From contig CM074821.1 of the NCBI GenBank assembly GCA_037447605.1, positions 1,550,001 through 1,614,000 on the forward strand: a DNA stretch of 64,000 nucleotides, read 5' to 3'. Source of the DNA: Zygnema circumcarinatum SAG 698-1b (Eukaryota > Plantae > Zygnematophyceae). Of the stretch, positions 46,278 through 52,000 are shown in pieces. The position numbers were made by a program, and so were the translations under genes. Numbering within the stretch: position 1 is the stretch's first letter; the number at the start of each line of letters is the position of its first letter. Below the pieces are notes generated by a model, which worked only from the letters and a program-made list of their open reading frames with translations, searched no databases and was not told where the DNA came from.

Positions 46278-48403
46278 ATCTGAATTCACGATTTGTAAAT
46301 GGTATATTTCACCTTCTTGTTTTGTGTTCTAACACGCCATTTACATGGACTATAGTTTTGTCTCTCTTTGGATTGGCGCTTTTTACTTGTCATTTCATGG
46401 AAACTGTACGGTTGTTGAATACATGTGCAGAAGTTGGACAATAGGGGGAGTCAAACATTGACCATCGCCAAATCAATTTCGTAAGCCTGTCGGGACCGCC
46501 GAGCCTGCCGGAGTTGCGGATCCCGACCCGGAATTCGTAAACGAGACTTTTGACTTATCGCCAAATCAATTTCGTAAGCTTGCCGGACGAATTAAGCATT
46601 GGCTAGGTACAGTACGCATTTTGGTACGGCTTTGTACGGCGGAGTTGCGGATCCCGACCCGGAATTCGTACATCGAAACTTTGACTTTTAGTACAATACA
46701 GTACAGTAGGACCCCGTCATATTTTCCACCTACATTTGGCAAAAATCGGGCGAAAATATTAGGGGGAGTCAGACTTAGACCAGCGCCAAATCAATTCAGA
46801 AAGCCCCCGACCCTAATTCCGCGTTGTACGGCAGCCCAATTCCGCGAAAAGTGGACGTTCGACAGGCTCGGGCGTCACGAATTCCAGAGAGCAATTATTT
46901 TGCCTCCGTATCTCCGGGCCAAGTCTGACTCCCCCCTTTTCGGCCCCCCGCGCTCCCTCCGCCGCCTGCCGCCCGCCGCCCTCCGTTTTGTCGCTACGCG
47001 CGTCACCACCGTGCGAGCGGCGTCCCGCCGCGGCGCCTCGCGCCCGCCGCCTGCCCGCCTGCTCGCTCGCTGCGAGCTCATATCAGCTCGGGTTTAGGGT
47101 TTAGGGCTCCTCCCTCGCCATCGCCCGAGCTATTCTTGCAGCGGAACGAGCAGAGCGTCCTCTCGCCTCACCCCAGTGAACGGTGAGCGGTGTGCCGTCG
47201 ACCACGGCAAGAGCGCGATCGGTTTATGGGGACGACGGCGGACTTGAGCAGCGGTGAGTCCTTGCCCTTGCCCCTGCCTCCCTTACCCTTGCCCCTGCCT
47301 CCCGTGCCCTTGCACCTGCCTCCCTTGCCCTTGCCTCTGCACCTGCCTTCCCTGCCCTTCCCCCTGCCTCCCTTTCCCTTGCCCCTGCCTCCTGTGCTCT
47401 TGCACCTGCCCCTGCCTCCCTCGCCTTTGCTCATGCATCCTTTGTCTCCCTTGGTGCTCTTTTTGCTACTGCTGCTGTTGCTGCTTTTTATGCTGCTGTT
47501 GTTGATGTTGCTCCTGCTTCTTATGCTGTTGCTTTTTTTGCTCTTGGTTTTTTTGCTGCTGCTGCTGCCTCTTCTTCTTCATCTGCTGTTTCTGCTGTTG
47601 TTGTTGTGCTGCTGCCGCTGCTACTGCTGTTGATACTGTTTCTGCTGCTACATCTCCTGCTGCTGCAGTTGATGTTGCTGTTGCTTTTTTTGCTCTTGGT
47701 TTTTTTGCTGCTGCTGCTGCCTCTTCTTCTTCATCTGCTGTTTTTGCTGTTGTTGTTGTGCTGCTGCCGCTGCTACTGCTGTTGCTGCTGTTTCTGCTGC
47801 TACTGCTGCAGCTCTAGTCGCTTCTTATCCTGCTGCTACTGCTACAGCTCCTGCTGCTACTGTTGCTACTGTTGCTGCTGTTGTTGCTATTGCTGCTGTT
47901 ACTGCTGTTGTTGCTGTTGCTGCTGCTGTTGCTGCTGTTGCTGCTGCTGGTGTTGCTGTTGTTGCTACTGTTGTTCCCGTTGCTGCTCCTGTTGCTGCTT
48001 CTTTTTCTGTTGCTATTGCTATTTGTTGTTACTCTTGCTGCTGCTGCTGCTATTGCTTCTTTTTCTACTGCTGCTGCTGTTTATGCTGCTGCTATTGTTG
48101 ATGCTGCTGCTGCTTCTTTTTGTGGTGTTGCTTTTTCTGCTTTTGCTTTTATTGTTACTGCTGCAGCAAAATTTTATTATTTTTTGGATGCTGCATTTGG
48201 TATTCTGCATTCTGCATTCCTCATTTCGCATTCCTTATTCCGCATTTTGCCTCCCTTGCCCATGCCCTAGCCTCCTTTGCCTTTGCCCCTTGCTGTGTTG
48301 CCCTTGCCTCTGTCTTCCCTTCCTTTTGCTTGTGCCTCCCGTTCCTTCGCTTATGCCATTGTTACGTATATGAGTGTGTGTTATTCCTCCCCCTCCCCAT
48401 TAA

Positions 48404-48474
48404 GTCAAAGTGGCGGATTGGTTATGCAACTGTTGCAAAACAGTTATAAAGGGGTTCAAATCCCCTCTTTGACT
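48404..48474 (+). ncRNA. tRNA-like unit (Cys/GCA-like, 6-nt anticodon loop), possible pseudo-tRNA or SINE head
   Basis: GTCAAAG-TG-GCG-GATTGGTTA-TGC-A-ACTGT-TGCAAA-ACAGT-TATAA-AGGGG-TTCAAAT-CCCCT-CTTTGAC-T. All four stems pair; perfect B-box GGTTCAAATCC. Confidence 0.7.
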
Positions 48475-48967
48475 TGTAGTGTTTATTCATTCTTCTATTT
48501 TTATTTATTTAAAGTTTTTGTCTTTTTGCTTCATATACCAAACATATGTTGTTATTTTTTCTAGTTGTTTTTATTCTATCTATCCATTCATTATTCTATA
48601 TATTATTCTATCTGCTTCTGCTGCTGCTATTGCTGTCGCAGCATGCTTTTTTTTTGCTGTTACATTCTGCATTCCGCATTCCCTATTCGGCATTCCGCAT
48701 TCCGCATTCTGCATTCTGCCTCCCTCGCCTCAGTCTACCGCCTCCAGTTCCTTTGCCTATGCTTGTGTTGTNNNNNNNNNNAAAAAAAAATGAATGCTGC
48801 AACAGCAGCAAGAGCAACAGCCGCAGCAGATAGGATAAAATATAGAATAAAGAATAGATAGATAGAATAAAAACAACTAAAAAAAAATAACAACAAATAT
48901 TTGGCATATGAAGCAAAAACACAAAAAGTTTAAATAAATAAAAATAGAAAAGTGAATAAACACTACA

Positions 48968-49038
48968 AGTTGAAGAGGGGATTTGAACCCCTTTATTACT
49001 GTTTTGCAACAGTTGCGTAACCAATTCGCCACTTCAAC
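48968..49038 (-). ncRNA. Second tRNA-like unit in the opposite foldback arm
   Basis: GTTGAAG-TG-GCG-AATTGGTTA-CGC-A-ACTGT-TGCAAA-ACAGT-AATAA-AGGGG-TTCAAAT-CCCCT-CTTCAAC-T. Stems are preserved despite substitutions. Confidence 0.7.
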
Positions 49039-52000
49039 TTAATAGGGAGAGGGAGGAATGACATACAATCATACACACAACAGAAGCATAAGCAAAGGAA
49101 CGAGAGGCACAAGGCAAGGAAGACAGAGGCAAGGGCAACACAACAAGGGGCAAAGGCAAGGGAGGCTGGAGCAGGTGCAAGGGAGGCAGAATGCGGAATG
49201 CGGAATGGGGAATGCGGAATGCAGAATGCGAAATGCAGCAGCCAAAAAAAAAAATGAATGCTGCTGTGCAGCAAAAAAAAATAATGAATGCTGTAGCAGC
49301 AGCAGCAAGAGCAGCAACCGCAACAGCANNNNNNNNNNAGGAGGAGCAGGAGTAGGAGTAGGAGCAGCAGCACAGCAACAGCAGCAGCAAAAAAAGAAGC
49401 AGAAGCAATAGAAGCAGAAGCAGTAGAAAAAGCAGCAGCAAAAAAAACAGAAGCAATAAGAGCAACAGCAGAAGCAGAAGCAGCAGCAGCAGCACCAACA
49501 GCAACAACAACAGCAGTAGTAGCAGCAGCACCACCACCAACAGCAACAACAACAGCAGTAGTAGCAGCAGCAGCAGAAAAAAAGCAGCAGCAGTAGCAAC
49601 AGCAGAAGCAGCAGCAGTAACAACAGCAGAAGCAGAAGCAGCAGCCAGCACCAGCAGCAAGAGCAGCAGCAGCAATAGCAGCAGCAGTAGCAGCAGCAGC
49701 AGCAGGAGGAACAACGGCAGCACGAGCAACAGCAGCACAGCAATAGCAACAGCAGCAGAAAAAGAAGCAGCAAAAAAAAAACCAGCAGCAGCAGCAGCAG
49801 TAAGAGCAGCAAGGGAGACAAGGGAGGCATGGGCCAGGGCGAGGGAGGCAGGGGCAGGTGCAAGGGCAAGGACTCACCGCTGCTCAACTCCGCCGTCGTC
49901 ACTTCGCGTCCTCGCTGACCACTCTCCCGTGGTGCTCCCGCGGGCGATGGTCAAGGTCTGACTCCCCCTATTGTATTTGGCAAATATAAGGTCCGTGTTA
50001 CCAATAGGCGAGCGGAATTCTGTTAGAGTTCATGTAAGTCCGTACGTATCGTATCGCATCATATCGTACCGTATCGTATCGTGACTAACCGCATACAGTA
50101 CATGAAGCACGCCTTAGCGTTTACTGAGGTAGCAAACCAAAAAGTTTCGAGCCCGTAACGGCTACTACAGCTCGTACGGCTAGTACGGATAGTACCGTAT
50201 CGGGGCGTATCGTATCGTATCGAAGCCAAGAAGAAGTGGAGAAGAGCGAGAGCCTCTTACGGCGGCTCGTGCGGGGAGAATAGGTGAGTTTTGCGTAAGC
50301 CCGTGACGTCTAGTACAGCTAGTACGGGAAGTACGGTTAGTACGGTTAGTACGAATAGTACGGCTAACACAAGTTACCGTACAAAAAGGTGGTTTCGGCA
50401 AAATCGGGGCGAATTTCTTGGGGACGCACTTTTGATGGTGGAAAATATGACGGGGTCCTACTGTACAGTACAGTACTGTATACGAAATTCTGGAATTTAG
50501 TACGGCCATGGTCAATGTCTGACTCCCCCTAATGTGTGCGTTTCATGAAAATGTGTGTACAAACTTGGGATTTGTTTTTGAGCCTGTAGAAGGCCTGCGA
50601 TTGGCAGAGCTTTGCGATGACGCCATGTGGCGTGTGGACCCCCCCCGGATAGTGCTTGGGGGCTTTGTGAACGATCGGCTCCTCGTGGTTCCCCAGATTG
50701 TTTTATGTCCATACACTTGACGGGTCGCCATGGTGAGTTCAATGCCAACTTCCAAACACAGCCCAATGTTGTTGTTGTTCATGAGACACCATGTTCTTGC
50801 AACCGCGCGATCAACAAAAAATAATCCCTGTTTTTTTTTTAAAGCAAGAAAGAAAAGACCACATGTAATATCCTGTTCAATATGCTTTTGTCTCCTATTT
50901 GGAGACGGCACTGCCTTCCTACTTCTAAGGGGGCACTAATACCCAAACCCTAAATGTTCTTGAACATATGTACAAATGATTTTTCACTGTAAGAAAACTA
51001 CAAATCTGCCCCTGCCCCCACAAACTTTACCCCTATAACTCGACACATGGTAAGAGCACACACCAAACGTGGAAATAAGAACATGCAAACGACCCAACAA
51101 CAAATCCCATGAATCCCGCCATTCCTCCCAACCTAAACCCTAAACTTTAAAGGCCCTAACCCTAAAATTGAATTCCTTCCTCTCTAATTTGAGTGACGCC
51201 GCAGTTCCGTTCTCCGTTCCTGCGGCTGCCACGACCTAAAAACACAGAAATGGAAAACACTCGAATGCAAACACGCGAAAGGAGATGGATGCGATTGATC
51301 ATCCACCCTGCACTCTATGCTACCTCCTCCCTCCTCCCCTCCCCCTTCCCTCCCTCCCTCCCTCCCTCCTCCCCTCCCCTCTCCTCCCTCTCCTCCCTCC
51401 TCCCTCTCCTCCCTCCTCCCTCTCCTCCTCCCCCTCCCCACCTCCCTCCCTCCCCCTCTCCCTCCCTCCCCCTCTCCCTCCCTCTATCTCTCCCTCCCTC
51501 TATCTCTCCCTCCTCTCCCTCCCACTATCTCTCCCTCCTCTCCCTCCCTCTCCCTCTTTCCTCTCCCTCCCTCTCCCTCACTCTCCCTCTCCCTCTCTCT
51601 CTCCCTCTCCCTCCCCCCTCTGTACACGCCCTCCCTCCCTCCCTCCCCCCCTGTACGGCTATGGCTGCTGCAGCAGCGCGGCAAAGCGTCTGCGCGCGTC
51701 CTCTATGGCCTCTTCCTTTCCCGCGTTTTTGAGGGCCTCCGCGCACCTCTTCAGGGCCTCAGAGCACCTCTCAACCCACTCCAAAACCTCCGGAAAAGCG
51801 ACGAAAAATTCCGCCGAAATATTTGTTGTTACCTGTTCTCCAACGACCAGCGAAGAAGAGTTAACTCCATTTCCTTTTCGAGCTGTGCCTATGGTGGGAA
51901 CTCTCTTTTTTTTTTTTTTTTTTTTGTATCCCCTATAGAAAAAAAAATGATAGAATTGGTGCGGTGGATTTGGCGGCTCAGGGAGAGGCTCTACAGCTGC

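Follow-up and report, generated by a model that had tools for sequence, protein, structure and literature searches.

Three-Level Nesting of Two Non-Coding Transposon Families in the Alga Zygnema circumcarinatum and Probable Repeated Use of One TA Site

Introduction

How do two families of small transposons come to lie inside each other, and does such a nest reflect chance pile-up, an error of assembly, composites that travel as units or the use of one family by the other as a landing site? The question is raised by a locus of the streptophyte alga Zygnema circumcarinatum SAG 698-1b, located in a stretch of 64,000 nucleotides (nt) at positions 1,550,001 to 1,614,000 of contig CM074821.1 (assembly GCA_037447605.1), which was analyzed as a whole and is here called the window. 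An element with AGGGGG ends contains an element with CAGT ends, which in turn contains a second element with AGGGGG ends. The reading that we favor, with a probability of roughly 0.6, is that non-coding elements of two unrelated transposon superfamilies truly inserted one into another by cut-and-paste transposition, with a hot spot for CAGT elements at one TA of the outer element (the shell).

Anatomy of the Nest

The nest was parsed by reading positions 45400-50700, by motif searches, self-BLAST and pairwise alignments. The elements on which the parse depends are the following.

46443-50530: shell2, the outer AGGGGG-end element, non-coding and Pangu-like; ends matching at 25/27 positions; AAT at 46440-46442 and 50531-50533
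46704-50463 (+): CAGT2, a non-coding CAGT-end element, Tc1/mariner-like; ends exact at 27/27 positions; TA on both flanks; 3760 nt plus sequence hidden in gaps
46704-46760 and 49970-50463: DNA of CAGT2 proper
46761-49969: inner AGGGGG-end element; ends matching at 24/27 positions; ATT at 46758-46760 and 49970-49972
45547-46277: shell1, an older AGGGGG-end copy, inverted with respect to shell2; flanks AAT and (A)AT
45598-46093 (+): CAGT1, a CAGT-end element of 496 nt, flanked by TA and placed in the same shell TA as CAGT2

Each level has its own pair of ends and its own target site duplication, and the host sequence rejoins once the insert is excised. In detail, deletion of 46761-49969 together with one ATT leaves a CAGT2 that can be aligned with CAGT1 from end to end: the 14 bases to the left of the rejoined site are identical, and the conserved blocks AAATATAAG and GTCCGTGTTA follow to the right. 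The inner element is placed immediately 3′ of the GGCGAAAATATT subterminal motif of CAGT2, as the motif map showed. Respectively, shell2 without CAGT2 aligns over its whole length with the reverse complement of shell1 (75.6% over 242 nt). The crossed pairings of the four AGGGGG ends (46443 with 49969, 46761 with 50530, and 46443 with the additional end at 46936) were rejected: their duplications mismatch and the hosts fail to rejoin. Because the crossed pairings give mismatched duplications, the nested parse is the right one, and the three-level nest is genuine on this scaffold. The initial annotation had proposed this nesting, with matching ends and a separate duplication per level, and had located the empty site of the innermost insertion in CAGT1; the reading, motif searches and alignments bear out the former, and the end-to-end alignment the latter.

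Assignment of the Two Families

Pangu elements, of the PHIS superfamily, produce 5′-ANT-3′ duplications, as shown by paralogous empty sites, and have terminal repeats of 11-40 bp which start with AG or GG (PMC4482050). Four complete AGGGGG copies were found in the window, namely the three above and one small element.

39527-39661: small element of 135 nt, AGGGGGTGTCAGAC subfamily; flanks AAT/AAT; no CAGT insert

The duplications are AAT at 39527-39661, 45547-46277 and 46443-50530, and ATT at 46761-49969. All are of the ANT form, and empty sites exist for the copies at 45547 and 46761. In the case of the former, shell1 is not present in a paralogous stretch at 60094-60300, where the empty site reads AAT at about 60150, its left side being blurred by an (AG)n tract. 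The ends (AGGGGGAGTCARAC...) are about 27 nt long, start with AG and match at 24-25 of 27 positions. The family thus fits a Pangu-like (PHIS) assignment by its termini, in likeness to the published elements as regards the ANT duplications with paralogous empty sites and the length and first bases of the ends. In contrast to Pangu, only non-coding copies are present here, and the window holds no DDE transposase or second reading frame. The ANT form that the initial annotation had given for Pangu is correct according to PMC4482050, and the proposal that an AWT duplication points to the PHIS group is consistent with three AAT and one ATT. PIF/Harbinger proper (Tourist-like, with the TWA duplication TAA/TTA) was rejected: the flanks are AAT or ATT, and shifting the borders by one base in either direction gives no direct repeat.

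CAGT1 and CAGT2 are each flanked by TA, and TA also precedes the fragment of a third CAGT element (CAGT3, described below). The inner half of the terminal repeat (GGCGAAAATATT) recurs subterminally, in direct orientation at one end and in reverse at the other. Subterminal repeats have been described for the ends of Emigrant/Lemi1 (pogo-like) and of Sleeping Beauty (PMC1636448), and the CAGT elements resemble both in the TA duplication and in the arrangement of GGCGAAAATATT. The likeness is one of end architecture, and no related transposase lies in the window. Together with the CAGT termini, these features fit small elements of the Tc1/mariner superfamily, pogo-like in type (PMC1636448), and agree with the initial annotation, which had so classified them from the TA duplication and CAGT termini.

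No transposase domain was found in the 10 longest open reading frames of the window or in its 122 stop-free segments of >=90 amino acids, so that superfamily membership is judged from ends and duplications, and all copies in the window are non-autonomous. A metagenome contig collection scanned for both end types gave 0 matches for each. The only domains in those segments, SRP54-type GTPase/SRP54_N and Med31, belong to host genes elsewhere in the window.

One TA Used Twice, in Opposite Orientations

The insertion site of the CAGT elements was compared between the two shells, with the following additional features.

46443-46703 (+): "B" arm of shell2, ending in TA-CAA-TA-CAG-TA at 46692-46703
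50464-50530 (+): "A" arm of shell2, starting with TA-CAG-TA-CAG-TA-CTG-TA at 50464-50480
59227-59330 (+): CAGT3, left fragment of about 100 nt with TA before it; no right end found
59077-59136 (+): left-end fragment of the AGGGGGT subfamily, 84% identical to 39527-39590

According to self-BLAST, shell1 and shell2 are mutually inverted, the "A" arm of shell2 matching the inverted left end of shell1 (45547-45602) at 87.7%, and the cores of CAGT1 and CAGT2 lie on the same strand. The cores are therefore opposite in orientation relative to the shell. The TA used is the same in both, since the arm of shell1 measures 51 nt and that of shell2, without the 5-nt TA-CWG units, 52 nt, and the sequence on the far side of this TA, CTAAAAGTYAAAG, is identical. 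Inverted segmental duplication was rejected as the source of the two shells: each has its own duplication, and the orientation of the core differs.

The two occupants are of different subfamilies. Terminal repeats agree at 25/29 and 27/29 positions within an element and at 18-21/29 between elements. In a manual count on the alignment, 7 positions separate the two elements, the ends of CAGT1 agreeing on one state and those of CAGT2 on another, and 0 positions split the other way. Since the ends are concordant within and discordant between elements, two source lineages and two independent insertions are indicated, and independent insertions at the same TA imply a hot spot for landing within the shell. 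The left end of CAGT3 is identical to that of CAGT1 at 50/61 positions, and by this resemblance CAGT3 is assigned to the CAGT1 lineage. The evidence supports a hot spot for CAGT elements, the mechanism of which we infer, at the TA that lies in this shell subfamily about 51 nt from the "A" end.

A plain pile-up, that is, chance nesting where transposons are dense and neither family prefers the other, would fit the repeat-rich nature of the window. TA sites inside AGGGGG elements make up only 1.8% of those in the window, and under a uniform TA null the two independent CAGT insertions would both fall in shells with p about 3e-4. The use of the same TA out of 22 in the shell brings a further factor of 1/22, that is, about 20-fold. 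On the other hand, the reverse nesting, with an AGGGGG element inside a CAGT one, represents a single event, for which the window null with five insertions gives p about 0.08; by itself it agrees with a pile-up and needs no special explanation. The association of 59077 with 59227 is at a different site, is not shown to be an insertion inside the element, and is likewise compatible with chance. On balance, pile-up without any preference is very unlikely. The preferential mutual targeting suggested in the initial annotation is supported for CAGT elements entering AGGGGG shells and not for the reverse; "reciprocal" was an overstatement.

It had also been noted that a CAGT element starts near the left end in three larger AGGGGG copies. 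This is true of the copies at 45547 and 46443, but "distance from the left end" mixes two different shell ends, since the two shells are mutually inverted. The copy at 59077 was not validated, and its CAGT piece is a left fragment. Its proposed extent of 59077-61762 was rejected, with flanks of ATT versus CCC and a proposed right end which matches 13/14 terminal bases and lies in CT-rich low-complexity DNA; about 0.5 such matches are expected by chance in the window (a rough estimate and not a computed value).

A different explanation is composite travel, in which the nesting happened once in ancestors and the composites spread as units, either a shell with its CAGT element moved by a Pangu-like transposase, or CAGT2 with the inner element and its foldback moved by a Tc1/mariner-like transposase. 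The two variants together are possible, yet we lean clearly against them as an account of the locus. For the first variant, the divergences are similar (76% identity for the shell, 71-78% for the core). Against it, the core lies in opposite orientation in the two shells, and the cores have subfamily-specific ends which are concordant within each element, a pattern that divergence in place would not yield. Travel of shell and CAGT element as a composite unit, as the initial annotation had envisaged, is consequently disfavored by the opposite orientation at the junction and the differing ends.

Scar-Like Units at the Borders of CAGT2

The borders of CAGT2 consist of the short units given above for the "B" arm on the left (46692-46703) and the "A" arm on the right (50464-50480). 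Up to five units of 5 nt are stacked there; the site in shell1 is a clean TA with no units. Within the window the doubled motif TACWGTACWGTA (TA-CWG-TA-CWG-TA) is confined to the borders of CAGT2, and shuffled sequences are not expected to contain it. Excision of Tc1/mariner elements leaves a scar composed of TA, about 3 bases of the element end, and TA. Each 5-nt unit consists of TA and the three outermost bases of the CAGT element, and the stacked units look like scars of repeated earlier excisions.

Several points weigh against the preferred stack of insertions with a hot spot. A single scar could have given rise to the stacked units by slippage. The statistics were obtained post hoc and refer to a single window with two complete CAGT copies. 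There is no CAGT-free shell of the shell1/shell2 subfamily in the window, so that the empty site of the second level is deduced from the TA flanks and the ends of CAGT2. Recombination between the 27-nt CAGT ends could in principle flip the core as well as homogenize the ends, and mimic opposite insertions of concordant elements; we rate it low. Finally, the three left ends of the nest are on one contig piece and the three right ends on another, joined by gaps, and the nest thus depends on the scaffold joins.

Continuity of the Scaffold

Both assembly gaps fall within the innermost element, in a long foldback.

47231-49900: foldback cargo, with left arm 47231-48771 and right arm 48782-49900
48772-48781: assembly gap, at the center of the foldback
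49329-49338: assembly gap, in the right arm of the foldback

Under a scaffolding artefact, the piece with the right ends (49339 onward) would be derived from another copy and the nest would be a chimera. Two gaps do lie between the left ends and the right ends of all three elements, and the AAT and TA duplications, being preferred targets, are weak identifiers of a matching pair. However, the arms are collinear and remain in register across the gap at 49329-49338, where 49339 pairs with 48117 and 49325 with 48118 in the arm alignment; this supports the join, with little sequence lost. Moreover, the order of the right ends exactly mirrors that of the left ends, the two hosts are collinear once rejoined and the duplications match at all three levels. 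The arms are 76-85% alike rather than 100%, and for this reason a fold-back artefact of reads or assembly was also rejected. We hold the chance of a chimera to be very small, slightly below that of a plain pile-up, and return to a stack of true insertions as the preferred account.

At the central gap (48772-48781) the left arm extends 116 nt beyond the last paired base, and probably at least about 116 nt of the inner end of the right arm are missing there. With its foldback center incompletely assembled and two gaps present, the length of the inner element is a lower bound.

Proposed Order of Events

In the favored history, a small Pangu-like (PHIS) element with AGGGGG ends would first have inserted at AAT. 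Tc1/mariner-like CAGT elements would then have used one TA of this shell, about 51 nt inside one end, repeatedly, so that two CAGT subfamilies came to occupy it in neighboring shells and in opposite orientations. In shell2, earlier excisions would have left the TA-CWG-TA units before the present CAGT2 arrived. A second Pangu-like element now sits in CAGT2 at ATT, after the subterminal motif, holding an old foldback with dead tRNA-like copies. This inner element may have inserted in place, or may have entered as inherited cargo of CAGT2.

The last alternative is the second variant of composite travel. Several points favor CAGT2 having arrived already with the inner element, and this is perhaps likely. 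The foldback arms are not bounded by TA-flanked ends; the ends of CAGT2 are perfect (27/27), in comparison with arms diverged by 15-24% and inner ends matching at 24/27; and the insertion spares the end of CAGT2 and its subterminal motif. A second CAGT-flanked copy with an internal AGGGGG/ATT junction was searched for, and none is present in the window.

A broader idea is that the shell offers a dedicated homing site for CAGT elements while CAGT elements carry Pangu-like ones, the families hitch-hiking on each other and each being movable by either of two transposases. This is an unlikely extension, to which we give less credit than to composite travel.

Comparison with Known Systems

In grasses, small elements show a preference for other small elements as insertion targets, in some cases at particular sites, and it was within a sorghum Tourist that the first Stowaway was discovered (PMC5172404, summarizing Jiang and Wessler 2001). 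Similarly to these nested multimers, the locus has a TA-flanked element of Tc1/mariner type within a PHIS-type element with 3-bp duplication, and the reverse, with separate ends and a duplication at each level. Unlike them, the host is a streptophyte alga, the family with 3-bp duplications is Pangu-like (ANT) and not Tourist (TWA), and one level carries a foldback cargo of 3 kb.

In intron 4 of the Triticeae beta-amylase gene, divergent Stowaways were independently acquired at one TA, beside an older footprint (PMC1925063). The locus of Zygnema resembles this case in the independent acquisition at the same TA and in the position of an element next to an earlier footprint. On the contrary, the site is here within a transposon, paralogous copies in one genome are compared and not orthologues across species, the orientations are opposite, and up to five 5-nt units are stacked.

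Since the nesting of small elements and repeated insertion at the same TA have already been published, the locus is a fresh example of known behavior. Particular to it are the Pangu-like host element, the presence of both orientations at one site and the stacked scar-like units. If the pattern were true genome-wide, the locus would clearly exemplify a small element of Tc1/mariner type that makes use of a specific TA in a Pangu-type element, and would offer a compact system in which to study why a TA is "hot" and whether two transposases can move nested elements. The window also provides evidence for ANT-duplicating Pangu-like small elements in a relative of land plants. Otherwise, the locus is an ordinary nested-transposon cluster, of use chiefly in repeat annotation.

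Cargo of the Inner Element

Within the inner AGGGGG element, a unit of 176 nt is followed by a GC-rich stretch, the foldback with two tRNA-like copies and the proper right end.

46923-46936 (-): additional right-type AGGGGG end, found by motif search and alignment
46937-47230 (+): GC-rich segment, single copy in the window by self-BLAST
48403-48475 (+): tRNA-like sequence in the left arm (ARAGORN, Rfam)
48967-49039 (-): tRNA-like mirror copy in the right arm (ARAGORN, Rfam)

The additional end, which the initial annotation had overlooked, would together with 46761 bound a small element of 176 nt with flanks ATT/TTT. The arrangement may represent one element with a duplicated end, or two neighboring elements mobilized together with the intervening DNA.

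The region of the GC-rich segment includes a telo-box-like motif, (TTTAGGG)2, at 47093-47106, an ATG at 47226 and a splice-donor-like GTGAGT at 47254. The mirror arm of the foldback lacks the upstream part and the ATG of this region (46937-47260), which looks like a captured 5′ end of a gene, later duplicated in inverted form.

The foldback arms are 76-85% complementary and rich in CTG/CAG repeats. The view of the foldback as a separate TA-flanked insertion is not supported: the arms start at GACGACGG, where neither a TA nor ends proper to the arms are present. The two tRNA-like copies score 45.5 and 51.7 bits with the Rfam tRNA model, above threshold, and the ARAGORN anticodon call comprises 4 bases.

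Surroundings of the Shells

The "B" arm of shell2 has a tandem duplication (46464-46556 and 46557-46687, units differing by 38 nt, from self-BLAST and alignment). Its breakpoints fall at a TTGAC microhomology that lies within a few bases of where the CAGT element inserted, and as a speculation it might have resulted from break repair.

Two copies of a stretch of about 230-350 nt, with 80% identity, are present in the window, as 45404-45546 plus 46278-46440 and as 60094-60300. Shell1 interrupts the former copy and shell2 adjoins it, and the latter is intact, about 800 nt downstream of CAGT3; the stretch may itself be a repeat family. A 19-nt palindrome, GTCAATC ACATA GATTGAC, is located at 45523-45541 and precedes the AAT duplication of shell1 by two bases. 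The palindrome is similar to the core of the AGGGGG terminal repeat, GTCAA...TTGAC, and is missing from the paralogue at about 60150.

Elsewhere in the window, two 100% identical tRNA-Ala(AGC) genes face each other at 37593-37665 (+) and 38618-38690 (-), 952 nt apart. They were rejected as a foldback, the repeat being limited to the 73-nt genes.

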